Shown piece after piece: positions 28,799 through 64,000 of a DNA stretch of 64,000 nucleotides. Numbering within the stretch: the stretch's first letter is position 1; every line of letters begins with the position of its first letter. The notes below the pieces were generated by a model that made no database searches, was not told the origin of the DNA, and saw only the letters and a program-made list of their open reading frames with translations. The DNA is taken from the sequence record NC_042060.1. The stretch is one strand, 5' to 3'. The position numbers were made by a program, and so were the translations under genes.

Positions 28799-29305
28799 AT
28801 GAATAATCGCCAGATTTACGAAGATATGTGTGAAGCTTTAATTGTATCTAATACTGAGTTAGTAAATGGATACAGTGCTGAAATCATTGCGGATATTTTG
28901 GATTTACTAAATAACTGGAGTACTAATACCCATTGGTATCACATTGCTGATAAAACAGTTATTAGGGATATCTGGAATTTATTCCGTAACAAAGGTAATC
29001 GTCTTCAACCCATCTTAAGTTTAGTTAGTCGATTTAAGATGGCTGTTACTGATTGGGATGGTGTGGTGGAATTACTAGCTAATTCTATTTATCCTTATCA
29101 ACCTAATTCAACTATTGTTGACCAAGAGATGTTAGCGCGATTAATTCCACGAAAAGAATTAACTGACATTTTATACCAAAATGATTGGTTAGTTTGGATT
29201 ATTTGTCAATGTTTAAATATCCGTTATATTACTAATCTAGTTGAATCTATCCCAGTTCAAGCTAAGCCATCTAAAAAGAAGGCGGTAAATAATAATGTTT
29301 CGTAA
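28799..29305 (+). CDS. Hypothetical protein (gp148 position)
   Basis: 168-aa coupled ORF. Confidence 0.7.
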   Translation: MNNRQIYEDMCEALIVSNTELVNGYSAEIIADILDLLNNWSTNTHWYHIADKTVIRDIWNLFRNKGNRLQPILSLVSRFKMAVTDWDGVVELLANSIYPYQPNSTIVDQEMLARLIPRKELTDILYQNDWLVWIICQCLNIRYITNLVESIPVQAKPSKKKAVNNNVS

Positions 29306-30011
29306 AATCTTAATTGATCTTGATTCACTATTAGATACACGGTTAGGGACCATTAGGTTACTAAATAAAGATGCGGCTAATAAGCTTGTTACCAATGGTC
29401 AAGTTTATTGGCATAGGGAAATGGATGATTGGACTAAACTAACAGATGGTTTAGTAACTAATGAACAATTTGTCGAAGCTTATTCTAAACGTGGTGGCGA
29501 AAATACTGCTGATACTATCAATAGTTCTATATTCACTGGTATCATTCCATTTATTATTCAATTAATAGCTCAATCAGATTTGAATAGATTAGACGGTATA
29601 GTTAATGCTAATTTTGAAACATGTCTTGAAGTTAATATCTGGCCATATGAATTAACACCAGATGCTCAAGATGAATTACTATACTGCTTACATAAGTACA
29701 TAGGTGATCATATTCAGATCACCCTGATTAATACTCAATTAACAGACCTTACTTGTTCTAGATTAAACTCTATCTATTCGATGGCGATTATGTATAATTT
29801 TGGAGAATGGTGTAAAACCCATGTTCTTGAATTAGGACAAGTGTTGATGCCTGACTTTACCATTATTGGTCCAAAGCTATTTGAGAAAGACGTAAGTGAA
29901 TTAGCTGTTGAAGATAAACAGTTTATTATCATGGATTTCCAGCTAAAGCATAAACTTAATATCGACTTTGATTTCATCGATGCTGAATACTTTTCCATGT
30001 TTAAGCCATGA
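29295..30011 (+). CDS. Possible HAD-fold protein (gp147 position)
   Basis: N-terminal ILIDLDSLLD resembles HAD motif I; the other motifs are not confirmed. Confidence 0.5.
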   Translation: MFRKILIDLDSLLDTRLGTIRLLNKDAANKLVTNGQVYWHREMDDWTKLTDGLVTNEQFVEAYSKRGGENTADTINSSIFTGIIPFIIQLIAQSDLNRLDGIVNANFETCLEVNIWPYELTPDAQDELLYCLHKYIGDHIQITLINTQLTDLTCSRLNSIYSMAIMYNFGEWCKTHVLELGQVLMPDFTIIGPKLFEKDVSELAVEDKQFIIMDFQLKHKLNIDFDFIDAEYFSMFKP

Positions 30012-36843: not shown

Positions 36844-37377
36844 TTAACTTTCTAGATAACGGATTTGACCATTTTCTAGATAACGTGCTGCACCATTCTC
36901 TAATAGTCGGATAGTATCTGACGTATCATCAATACGTTGAATTAGTATATTACATTCACCATAGTAAGCATAACTACTCGACATAGCTACTATCGTGTAT
37001 GGAACAATATCCGTAGTTGCATTGATTGGTGTTGTATCGAATGAAATATCATCTGGTCCAAGCTTCCAACCTCGTGAACGGTTAATTTCTTCAGCAATCG
37101 CTTTAGGTGTTAAAGTACCAACTATCTTAAGGATAGATCCTTCACCAATAGCTCGTGGATCAGCAAAATCTAACCGACGGTAAGTTAACATGTACTTAAT
37201 GTCAGTAGTAATGTCGATCATTTCAATAAATGTACGTCCAGGCTCAATCGTGGTTGGACTAAAAAACATATCTTCAAATGTAACTGTTTCTGGTTTGAAG
37301 TTTATTTTTAAATCATCCCGCGCAAGTTTTACTAGCGCATTCCTCGATGCCATGTCATACGGAAAGATATCCTGCAT
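36844..37377 (-). CDS. Probable virion protein with C-terminal RxLE[ND]G repeats (gp143 position)
   Basis: Paralogous N-domain (YRRLDF); ends RLLENG-AA-RYLENG-QI-RYLES. Confidence 0.75.
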   Translation of the reverse strand: MQDIFPYDMASRNALVKLARDDLKINFKPETVTFEDMFFSPTTIEPGRTFIEMIDITTDIKYMLTYRRLDFADPRAIGEGSILKIVGTLTPKAIAEEINRSRGWKLGPDDISFDTTPINATTDIVPYTIVAMSSSYAYYGECNILIQRIDDTSDTIRLLENGAARYLENGQIRYLES

Positions 37378-54924: not shown

Positions 54925-55800
<876 letters not shown>

Positions 55801-55808
55801 GGTGTGTA

Positions 55809-56252
55809 ATGGCTGATACAAGAGCTGAATTAGTAGCTGCTTGGAATGTGGCTAATAAACCTAAAGATAATAATGGTAAGCCTAGGGATTTAACTGTTGA
55901 TGATGTTGAATTTATAGGGACTGATACATTCTTAGCAACTGGTACAAATGCCAAAACAACAATGAGAGCGAAGACCAGTTCACTTTATTTTAAAGGTGAG
56001 ACAGTTATTTACTTTAATAGACGCTCTTTACCAGAGTACTGTCTTGGTATAAAAGTACCGGGTAAACCAACTGACTATACTGATAATTTAGAAGTAGCTG
56101 AAAAATTAAGAGATGTTTACGGTATTCCATTTATTATAGATGAGATACAACCGCAACCTATTACTGGGAATACGGTTACGATACATCCATACTTTAATAA
56201 CTTGTCGTGGATACCAACAATACCAGTAACTCTTGAATTTGAAAGTAGTTAA
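55809..56252 (+). CDS. Virion protein, stand-alone paralogous domain (gp126 position)
   Basis: YFNRRSL motif; 147 aa. Confidence 0.65.
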   Translation: MADTRAELVAAWNVANKPKDNNGKPRDLTVDDVEFIGTDTFLATGTNAKTTMRAKTSSLYFKGETVIYFNRRSLPEYCLGIKVPGKPTDYTDNLEVAEKLRDVYGIPFIIDEIQPQPITGNTVTIHPYFNNLSWIPTIPVTLEFESS

Positions 56253-61954: not shown

Positions 61955-62363
61955 TGAAATCTACCTTAATCACAACGGCCTCCAAATCTACAATGTTGGG
62001 GAGCCTCTTTTTAGTTTGATGTACGGACCTTCCCTTGAAGGATTCACTCTTTTCCTTATTACTTGATTTCTGCCATTTATGCGGGTCACTCGAACAATAT
62101 AACTTTTCGGTGGCCCGCTTAAACTGTTTTTCTTGAGGGATCTCCTCAATGTTTTTCTTGGCATAATCTGTAATAAAGTCCTCTAGCCCTTTGGGCATAA
62201 AGGCATCCTGAACAGGATGGAATTCTTCAAAGAAAGTATTAATGTATTTATCATCATCTACGGTAGACATCTTATTATCTACCATGGTATTTTTTTCTAT
62301 AAGAGATACCCTCAGGGCATCTTGCCATCTTTCGATGACTTCTGGAAATAATTGAACGTTCAT
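61911..62363 (-). CDS. Hypothetical early protein (gp121 position)
   Basis: 150 aa; directly downstream of a TATATTAC promoter. Confidence 0.65.
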   Translation of the reverse strand: MNVQLFPEVIERWQDALRVSLIEKNTMVDNKMSTVDDDKYINTFFEEFHPVQDAFMPKGLEDFITDYAKKNIEEIPQEKQFKRATEKLYCSSDPHKWQKSSNKEKSESFKGRSVHQTKKRLPNIVDLEAVVIKVDFNGNIKNCGAYSSIS

Positions 62364-62405
62364 TTGGATTAACCTATTTTTAAATTAGAAGATCATGATC
62401 ATTAC

Positions 62406-62440
62406 TGTAATATAGATCTTAAACTTTTTTTAATGTAATA
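62406..62440 (-). promoter_or_regulatory. Early promoter with TATATTAC core
   Basis: 34 of 35 nt identical to 10692-10726. Confidence 0.8.
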
Positions 62441-62443
62441 CAA

Positions 62444-62474
62444 CATAAAGCCCTCCCCGAAGGGAGGGCCTATG
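62444..62474 (-). terminator. Capsid-gene terminator, gccctccc family
   Basis: GCCCTCCC cgaa GGGAGGGC with a TTTATG tail on the minus strand, 4 nt after the TAA of the readthrough extension. Confidence 0.8.
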
Positions 62475-62478
62475 TCTG

Positions 62479-62559
62479 TTACTCTTCTAACTTCCGGGCA
62501 TTACCGTCTTCCAAATAACGGATAGTCCCATTTTCTAGATAACGGTAACCCTTTCCAGC
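62479..62559 (-). CDS. Putative stop-codon readthrough extension of the major capsid protein (AGKGYRYLENGTIRYLEDGNARKLEE)
   Basis: 26 sense codons in frame after the capsid TGA, with no upstream start of their own. The peptide matches the gp143 C-terminal repeat. Confidence 0.72.
   Translation of the reverse strand, partial: AGKGYRYLENGTIRYLEDGNARKLEE
62496..62551 (-). promoter_or_regulatory. Putative readthrough-stimulating RNA hairpin 8 nt 3' of the capsid UGA
   Basis: Folded by hand: mRNA nt +12..+33 pair with +59..+38 (20 of 22 positions, 5 of them G-U), ACUA loop, plus GGG/CCC at the base after a 2-nt bulge. Confidence 0.62.
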
Positions 62560-64000
62560 TCACGGCTTAAGATCAGCAAGCTTACCGTTGAACTGAGTTT
62601 CGCCCATGACTTTCTGGAAGCCAGTGATCTTGAACTCTAGTGCGAACGGAATGTTGTTGACGTGTAGGTTGAACGGAATGGCCGCGATTTCGCGAGTAAC
62701 CTGGTGACCACCACGAGTGATCGGTAGGTCAGCGATAACAGTAGATACGTAGAAGAACTGGCCCCAGGAGAGGATGTCGTTTTCTTGTTGTACTGCGCGG
62801 GTCGGAATTACAACTAGCTTACCATCAAATAGCTGGTTGTTGGTGGAAACGATATCGTACTTGAGATAAGCACCTAGAGTACGGTCGTCACCTTTAGTCA
62901 TTAGATAGTTAGCAATCTCTTTGTCGGAGCAGAAGAGATACATCGGAGTTTCATCCTGGTTACCGGAGATAACACGGAAGGCAGCTTCAATGTTGGAATC
63001 ACGGTGAGCCGGGAATAGCTCAGCTTTAACACAGTTTAGGATCGCAGCGCAAACGTCGTCCCAACGATCTTTAGACTTGATGGTGTCGATGACTTTCTCA
63101 AGATCTAGTTCTTTGTAACGATAGGTCGGACGCATTACAGCGGATAGTGCACCTTCGATGATACCAAACTTCGGACGGTTGTAACCATTGTGTACAACTT
63201 CACGTAGTTGAGCAAGGTAGTTAAGCATGCGCTTAACAGCGTTGTTGCTGTTACGGATGTTGGTGTTAACGGTTAGAGCTTTAACAACCTCACCCGGACC
63301 TTCATCGGTCATGGTGTCCATCGGTAGAGTTACAGGAGCGTGCATCGGGATCGGATGACGGAACTGTAGTGCACGGGTCTGTAGTAGGTGACCACGCTGA
63401 CGACGGTTAGTGTTGGTGAAGCGAGTATCTAGTTCGAAACCGATAACAGCTAGGTCAGTTAGCTGATCTAGAATAGCTTTAACAGCCGGGTCAGCATTAT
63501 CCATTACCTGGCCATCTTCGTTTAGAACTTTATCGACGTAAGTGTCGGTAGCACCAAACTTAGAATCGCCTTTGGATAGGCTGATAGTACCACCAAAACC
63601 AACGCTTAGACGTAGGCTTAGTTTAGCAGTCTTAAGGTCGTTAATAACGCCATCAGCTGAACCGTCGATGAAAGTGGTATCGCCACTAACAACAAGGTCA
63701 TCGCTATCGAAACGGATAACTGCGTTCCGGGTATCACCAACTAGATCGGGCTGGAACACAGCGCGAGGTAGACGGTCAACCTTGAACTTAACAACTTTAC
63801 CGCCGAGTAGAACGAATAGGTTCTTTAGACGACCAGCCGGATCAATGGTGTCAGAAACTTCAAGCATGCCACGCTGAATGAGTAGGTTAGCATTGGAGTT
63901 ACCCATTAGATCAAGACGTACGTTCGCTTTTAGCGGAGCAGTAGTGATAGTTAGGTTCTGCTCGTTCTTGATGGTGTACGGAGGAACAAGAGCCGGGTCT
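62560..64000 (-). CDS. gp120: Major capsid protein, 3' part (5' end outside window)
   Basis: The frame stays open to the window edge; strongly biased, GC-richer high-expression codon usage; position and sequence match the phiKZ MCP; ends LADLKP-TGA. Confidence 0.88.
   Translation of the reverse strand, partial: DPALVPPYTIKNEQNLTITTAPLKANVRLDLMGNSNANLLIQRGMLEVSDTIDPAGRLKNLFVLLGGKVVKFKVDRLPRAVFQPDLVGDTRNAVIRFDSDDLVVSGDTTFIDGSADGVINDLKTAKLSLRLSVGFGGTISLSKGDSKFGATDTYVDKVLNEDGQVMDNADPAVKAILDQLTDLAVIGFELDTRFTNTNRRQRGHLLQTRALQFRHPIPMHAPVTLPMDTMTDEGPGEVVKALTVNTNIRNSNNAVKRMLNYLAQLREVVHNGYNRPKFGIIEGALSAVMRPTYRYKELDLEKVIDTIKSKDRWDDVCAAILNCVKAELFPAHRDSNIEAAFRVISGNQDETPMYLFCSDKEIANYLMTKGDDRTLGAYLKYDIVSTNNQLFDGKLVVIPTRAVQQENDILSWGQFFYVSTVIADLPITRGGHQVTREIAAIPFNLHVNNIPFALEFKITGFQKVMGETQFNGKLADLKP

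Follow-up and report, generated by a model that had tools for sequence, protein, structure and literature searches.

A conserved repeat module behind the UGA stop codon of the phiKZ-type major capsid protein gene suggests programmed readthrough

The window analysed here is a stretch of 64,000 nucleotides from sequence record NC_042060.1, at the end of which lies the 3' part of a gene for a major capsid protein (MCP). This protein is a homologue of gp120 from phiKZ, the model nucleus-forming jumbo phage, whose capsid has been solved to 3.5 Å and whose virion proteome has been catalogued. The phiKZ gene PHIKZ120 is annotated as 'major head protein' and matches the MCP of the window by 99.7%. A 1,001-base probe (62300-63300) matches Pseudomonas phage PA7 at 100% and phiKZ at 99.7% identity. 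The MCP frame is open from position 64000 down to 62563, where it is followed by TGA; behind this stop codon the same frame continues through a short extension, which is the subject of this analysis. The whole feature lies on the minus strand and consists of the following parts.

62563..64000, minus strand: 3' part of the MCP gene, last 479 codons, homologue of phiKZ gp120, cut by the window edge
62560..62562, minus strand: MCP stop codon TGA (UGA), next base G, the proposed leaky stop (from reading of the open reading frames, ORFs, and from relatives)
62482..62559, minus strand: in-frame extension of 26 sense codons (from frame conservation, synonymous variation and homology to gp143)
62496..62551, minus strand: RNA hairpin inside the extension, starting 8 nt past the UGA, -24.7 kcal/mol
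62479..62481, minus strand: second stop codon TAA, closing the extension
62448..62471, minus strand: intrinsic terminator 3' of the extension, a 10-pair stem (7 GC pairs) with a T-run

The extension peptide is composed of a short linker and three 8-residue repeats, each having Arg as its first, Glu as its fourth and Gly as its sixth residue. An earlier reading of this DNA, hereafter the original prediction, had described an open stretch running from the TGA in frame to a second stop just ahead of a terminator, an 8-residue repeat with three different Leu codons, the lack of a start codon ahead of it, and TAA stops in the fibre-like, endolysin and gp143 genes of the window. All of these observations hold, with one addition concerning the start codons: the extension contains neither ATG nor GTG, and codon 16, a TTG, is the sole alternative start in frame. 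The minus-strand orientation and the truncation of the MCP gene by the window edge had not been mentioned in that prediction. Since the terminator stands 3' of the extension, the latter is part of the MCP mRNA. A terminator-like hairpin is found at the equivalent place in all MCP relatives displayed. Among the 56 long ORFs of the window, 40 stop with TAA, 10 with TGA and 6 with TAG; UGA is a minority stop, yet it is used by the gene of the major capsid protein. The extension lacks annotation in nearly all of the 63 public records that match.

For comparison, MCP 3' ends were taken from annotated relatives and from uncultivated viral contigs, among which 23 distinct sequences bear the repeat module. 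They represent at least seven genera (Phikzvirus, phiPA3, Pawinskivirus, Phabiovirus, Serwervirus, Tepukevirus, Noxifervirus and Viktualia, together with uncultivated contigs) and include phiKZ, phiPA3, PS119XW, Phabio, 201phi2-1, Viktualia, Psa21, Noxifer and metagenomic relatives, with MCP identity down to ~59%. All 23 have TGA at the end of the MCP gene and an open in-frame extension of 24-30 codons, the length of which varies between relatives by whole codons. Twelve variants of the two C-terminal MCP residues occur among the relatives; the UGA itself is invariant. It is followed by A in 16, G in 6, C in 1 and T in none of the 23 sequences, and the second stop is TAA in 14, TGA in 5 and TAG in 4. 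The comparison that the original prediction had proposed thus finds both the open frame and the identity of the UGA conserved in every module bearer. A sense codon in place of the stop, which would have pointed to a strain-specific nonsense change, occurs in none of the relatives; the position is always occupied by TGA or TAA.

The pattern of variation within the extension is that of a protein. Conservation begins at the first codon past the UGA. In repeat 1, Arg, Glu and Gly are each present in 23/23 sequences; in repeat 2, Arg and Glu are present in 22/23 and Gly in 23/23. These six (nearly) invariant residues are encoded by two to five synonymous codons apiece, including switches between CGN and AGR, and variability is highest at third codon positions. 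The ratio of nonsynonymous to synonymous variation (pN/pS) is 0.64, with synonymous sites near saturation. The other frames across the extension are rarely open (+1 in 1/20 and +2 in 3/20 sequences). Because the MCP frame remains open and the codons of invariant residues vary synonymously, the extension is best understood as translated sequence rather than as an RNA or DNA element.

Lineages with and without the extension were paired on a neighbour-joining tree of MCPs. L063 has TGA followed by the module, and its sister L064 has TAA with nothing after it; the same holds for L054 (TGA and module) and the adjoining L060 (TAA, nothing after). In L056 the TGA is followed by a 203-codon in-frame immunoglobulin-like (Ig-like) stretch, and the adjoining L057 and L058 again have TAA with nothing after. 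Extension-less lineages therefore adjoin extension bearers on the tree, and every one of them stops with TAA. Since the extension-less sisters use TAA, TGA accompanies the presence of something to read into. The Ig-like stretch (L056:1628-2242(+)) carries a Big_2 domain (E 4e-9) behind the MCP TGA and has an ATG at codon 3 with poor Shine-Dalgarno spacing. In L061:1643-1933(+), the MCP gene ends with TAA, followed in frame by Big_2 and the same octad module, for which a plausible start codon was not found. In the distant chimalliviruses Xoo-sp14, DT01, RP12, Deimos-Minion, RSL2, OBP and CR5 the module is absent and the MCP gene is mostly TAA-terminated; these MCPs bear constitutive Gly/Thr/Pro-rich tails instead. 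Because distant MCPs end in such tails, the MCP C-terminus looks like a general site for surface appendages. Constitutive low-complexity C-terminal tails of this kind (rich in Gly, Thr or Pro) were observed on the more distant chimallivirus MCPs L025-L031, L055, L057-L059 and L065.

The match of the extension peptide to a second protein of the window, also seen in the original prediction, is confirmed: it concerns the C-terminal 21 residues of the gp143 homologue. The relevant features of this protein and of its paralogues in the window are listed below.

36844..37377, minus strand: gp143 homologue, 177 residues, TAA stop, DUF7941 fold, phrog_2935
36847..36909, minus strand: C-terminal tail of the gp143 homologue with the same three-repeat module (21 residues)
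54928-55800, plus strand: gp127 homologue, DUF7941 (PF25613, E 7e-28, above the cut-off)
55809-56252, plus strand: gp126 homologue, DUF7941 (PF25613, E 9e-10, above the cut-off)

HHalign placed a profile of 20 MCP extensions on the C-terminal 27 columns of the gp143 family (96.3% probability, E 1.5e-9), with both ending at the protein C-terminus. Even the lone 26-residue peptide has as its best PHROG match the C-terminal end of the gp143 family, phrog_2935. The module tail is present in 39/39 aligned gp143 homologues, with five invariant Arg/Glu positions. A profile scan of all six frames of the window yields the MCP extension and the gp143 tail as the only copies of the module.

The AlphaFold2 model of gp143 has a predicted local distance difference test score (pLDDT) of 91 and consists of a globular body and a tail (residues 150-177, pLDDT 75-85), in which beta-bridges recur every eight residues. 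The module is self-contained, and its three 8-residue repeats are predicted to form a small beta-meander. With Foldseek, the sole significant PDB match of the model is the N-terminal domain of PHIKZ127 (9xqd_0, E 1.7e-6, template modelling scores 0.60/0.69), a DUF7941 protein of the outer baseplate. At the sequence level, gp143 of the window reaches 18.7 bits against Pfam PF25613, under the curated cut-off of 27, and a precomputed PF25613 match exists for 15/47 gp143 homologues. The gp127 and gp126 homologues are paralogous to the body of gp143 but have no repeat module. As a side observation, the gp143 family profile (alignment A2) has a weak sequence match, E 0.0033, to the baseplate 'Triplex 2 protein' chain 9gb2_M.

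gp143 has been described as a cytoplasmic holin-specific lysis regulator (PMC12894885), and it was non-essential in transposon sequencing (TnSeq; 10.1101/2025.11.23.690004). The TnSeq preprint text holds no insertion data for the region past gene 120. In 201phi2-1 the annotation of the gp143 homologue records its detection in virions by mass spectrometry. The same annotation is given to 201phi2-1 gp227 (L070:1-207), the homologue of the phiKZ holin gp142, which lies beside the gp143 homologue.

The module is also found far from the capsid gene. A survey with a degenerate DNA pattern for two repeats, covering viral contigs of all sizes, returned at least 120 stretches (L072-L191), according to which the octad module terminates many proteins of unrelated phages. 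Among the matches listed, 86/121 modules reach a stop codon 19-24 residues past the first Arg, and the carriers include gpJ-like tail proteins (phrog_1101 and phrog_6284, with PF13550 in one) and a major tail protein (phrog_1407). Three examples of module carriers on viral contigs are given here.

L091:915-3218(+): module carrier
L108:9135-11180(+): module carrier
L094:3378-3869(+): module carrier

No Pfam family matched the module, and no solved structure was matched with the two profiles tried. On an unrelated 28-kb contig (IMGVR_UViG_3300033069_001702), a 322-residue ORF (L125:827-1873(-), phrog_24272) located three genes past the MCP gene stops at TGA, and the next 27 codons in frame encode a copy of the module and include no start codon. 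L125 is possibly an independent instance of the same device of a stop followed by the module.

The extension thus has the sequence-level hallmarks of programmed readthrough, namely an in-frame ORF, a conserved UGA and selection on the protein. A conserved programmed UGA readthrough of the MCP gene is well supported by this comparison, and a small share of the shell subunits probably carries an extra surface peptide. We propose that the MCP gene of the phiKZ clade ends at a weak UGA, at which most ribosomes would stop and release the 747-residue shell subunit. A minority would decode the UGA as an amino acid and continue for 24-30 residues up to the second stop just ahead of the terminator. As decoder we propose a near-cognate tRNA of the host, with tRNA-Trp as the most likely candidate. 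Of the ~1,600 subunits, a sub-stoichiometric set would then display the module on the capsid outside, where it may tether a partner, e.g. gp143 or other DUF7941 proteins. Outer display is suggested because the MCP C-terminal arm, which has been modelled to its last residue (747), reaches at the pentons gp244, a protein decorating the outer capsid surface (PMC11297242). Taken together, we consider it likely that UGA readthrough by near-cognate decoding adds the module to a minority of MCP subunits for display on the outside.

A phage-encoded opal suppressor was tried as decoder and rejected: the seven tRNAs of phiKZ are Thr, Asn (two), Asp, Met, Pro and Leu, none of which reads UGA. No tRNA genes were found in the window.

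The proposed partner deserves separate consideration. DUF7941 proteins, with phiKZ gp126, gp127 and gp143 named among them, have been proposed to assemble head-to-tail in such a way that the tail or linker docks on the N-terminal domain of the next protomer (10.64898/2026.04.21.720040). Because the module ends gp143, and because DUF7941 proteins are proposed to dock in this manner, the module may be a docking or association peptide and the extended MCP a tether for gp143/DUF7941 proteins. In its widest form this idea would make the Arg/Glu/Gly octad a widespread C-terminal connector of virion proteins, with readthrough metering a few dozen copies per capsid; tethering of DUF7941 proteins such as gp143 to the head might then produce fibres anchored on the capsid or couple capsid production to the gp143/holin lysis clock. 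We put this forward as speculation that is rather unlikely to be correct as a whole. It includes the assumption that the same device arose repeatedly, in line with the recurrence of a stop followed by an extension on another protein (L125) and, with Ig-like domains, behind the MCP stop in L056 and L061; repeated origin is held here with the same reserve.

Several observations weigh against the proposed readthrough or against docking to DUF7941. The module also occurs in phages outside the chimalliviruses, and according to a profile comparison the gp127 linker is unrelated to it. gp143-type tails are found on ~231-kb contigs, which are sized like those with extension-less MCPs, although the contigs were not matched one-to-one. 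gp143-type tails thus also accompany genomes with extension-less MCP relatives, so that the link between the two is not a strict one. Nor was within-genome co-variation of MCP extension and gp143 tail detected: in five genomes, same-genome identities are no higher than between-genome identities. L061 is an exception in that its module sits behind TAA rather than TGA. The pN/pS of the extension, 0.64, is moderate. Finally, the cryo-electron microscopy models finish at residue 747. This last point is weak counter-evidence, because icosahedral averaging would hide a rare extension.

The original prediction had gone beyond readthrough as such and regarded the hairpin 8 nt past the UGA as its stimulator. 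The hairpin itself is real in the window. It comprises 4 pairs, a 2-nt bulge and then 7+6+5 pairs closed by a 6-nt loop, and with z = -5.39 against dinucleotide shuffles it is strong (0/200 shuffles equally stable). The DNA of the gp143 tail in the window, for which the original prediction had denied comparable folding, indeed folds far more weakly (-17.4 kcal/mol, z -1.7), and the z values of gp143-module DNA (-1.7, +1.0 and -0.7) all remain well short of the phiKZ-type hairpin. Most relatives form some stable structure from 5-8 nt past the UGA, and the GGG/CCC and CCGU/ACGG pairings are kept at 88%. When the phiKZ-derived structure is imposed on the alignment, six pairs are changed on both sides and 79% of cells are paired; this compares with 76% of shuffled cells, and the measure is inflated by relatedness and by the derivation of the structure from one member sequence. 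The RNAalifold consensus over the relatives, in contrast, is reduced to 5 pairs with -3.4 kcal/mol, and the Psa21-like and Noxifer-like clades fold differently from the phiKZ type. Moreover, synonymous recodings that encode the same peptides with phage codon usage fold almost as well as the natural sequences (mean z -0.36; phiKZ z -1.4, p ~0.09). Peptide and structure are inseparable here, because the paired bases belong to the codons of conserved Arg, Asp-Gly, Gly and Ala residues. The modest covariation is confounded by these conserved amino acids. The hairpin is largely a by-product of the peptide codons. It may have a stimulatory role; that it is a required stimulator of readthrough seems doubtful. 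Of the original interpretation, readthrough consequently gains strong support from the 23/23 TGA codons, the frame, the peptide and the TAA sisters, whereas the stimulatory hairpin, with a shared core of ~5 bp, is not supported as a claim of its own.

One could also regard the stretch as an untranslated conserved 3' RNA or DNA element, e.g. a hairpin stabilising the message ahead of the terminator, which is in frame by chance. Its placement between stop and terminator and its stable fold would suit such an element. Sub-threshold Rfam matches to leaders or attenuators span hairpin and terminator, and the adjoining intergenic DNA likewise has conserved motifs. An element of this kind, however, would not be expected always to keep the MCP frame open while the other frames are almost always closed, nor to vary synonymously at invariant residues. 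It would also leave the homology to a real protein C-terminus, widespread in phage proteins, without explanation, and the RNA structure common to the relatives is minimal. We therefore judge this explanation to be improbable.

A separate small peptide, produced by non-canonical initiation or by termination-reinitiation past the MCP stop, is highly improbable. A purine-rich Shine-Dalgarno-like run does follow the UGA in the group of phiKZ, PS119XW, Phabio and 201phi2-1, and one record annotates a small ORF at this place, but in another frame. The run is missing in the Psa21-like and Noxifer-like clades, neither an ATG nor a conserved GTG or TTG stands at usable spacing, and conservation already begins at the first codon past the UGA. 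In addition, the extension keeps to the MCP frame throughout, a constraint that independent initiation would not impose.

Very little speaks for the extension as a decaying relic of a longer ancestral C-terminus cut by a nonsense mutation, even though distant chimalliviruses have long constitutive MCP tails and L068 has a short possible remnant behind TAA. A relic would not remain open and conserved in its residues over 23 lineages diverged to ~60% MCP identity, and it would not retain TGA specifically; where the module is missing, the stop is TAA. Least credible of all is selenocysteine at the UGA: a bacterial selenocysteine insertion sequence (SECIS), read here by host SelB, is a hairpin closely 3' of the UGA, and the window hairpin has its loop ~33 nt from the UGA with G as first base, but Rfam yields only sub-threshold leader-like matches and, with E values of up to 10 allowed, none to SECIS, apical stem and loop are not conserved among the relatives, Cys or a sense codon replaces the UGA in none of them, and SelB-limited decoding would presumably be ill-suited to a major capsid protein.

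Programmed readthrough of the MCP gene would have a parallel in phage Q-beta, whose coat gene ends with a leaky UGA that is read through in a small fraction of translations and so gives rise to A1, a minor C-terminally extended coat protein in the shell. Both cases share the UGA at the coat gene end and the in-frame extension proposed here. In Q-beta, however, which belongs to the small RNA phages, the added part is a folded domain of ~200 residues that infection requires, whereas the present candidate belongs to dsDNA jumbo phages of 270-280 kb and comprises a 26-residue repeat module. In T7 (10A/10B) and in the capsid and tail proteins of Listeria phage, a minor longer subunit is made at a fixed ratio by programmed frameshifting. 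These systems use -1 or +1 shifts at slippery sites, in contrast to the extension described here, which lies in frame 0 behind the stop and has no slippery site. Ig-like (Big_2) additions to phage structural proteins, some of which arise by recoding, resemble the extension as surface decorations on a highly repeated subunit, and L056 and L061 do have Big_2; the extension of the window is not Ig-like. The arrangement of UGA, 8-nt spacer and stable stem-loop in this phage recalls the gag-pol pseudoknot of murine leukaemia virus and the alphavirus-type stem-loops. Their targets are eukaryotic ribosomes and release factors, and their structures are clearly conserved, whereas the host is bacterial here and the structure is not conserved beyond the peptide codons. 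With the DUF7941 proteins (Goslar gp22/gp23; phiKZ gp126, gp127 and gp143) the MCP extension shares homology through the gp143 tail; it differs from them in lacking the DUF7941 domain, and the module is also present in phages said to lack DUF7941.

In the literature on readthrough in phiKZ and Chimalliviridae and on readthrough of the MCP stop codon, no report of this extension was found, and no ribosome-profiling study of phiKZ was found in the literature. If the proposal is correct, the capsid has a hidden minor subunit with an exposed peptide, which adds a new player in assembly, trafficking, host binding or lysis timing. Large dsDNA phages, for which frameshifting was the known route, would then also use programmed readthrough as a decoration strategy, and a shared module would connect the capsid with gp143, a lysis regulator already studied by experiment, and with the DUF7941 filament family. 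The octad module is, in addition, a new testable motif at the end of many tail proteins in unrelated phages.

Two further sites were noticed next to the MCP gene and one elsewhere in the window. Directly past the terminator stem, a TATG (62444-62447, minus strand) lies within a motif kept in all relatives, distant ones included, and this motif fits the published late-promoter consensus of phiKZ (PMC4666361). An AT-rich 10-base motif upstream of gene 121 (62407-62416, minus strand) is likewise conserved. Conservation of these two motifs accounts for blastn alignments that reach ~160 nt beyond the MCP stop. Apart from this region, a putative 238-codon ORF (29295-30011, plus strand) stops at TGA, behind which the same frame stays open for 59 codons.

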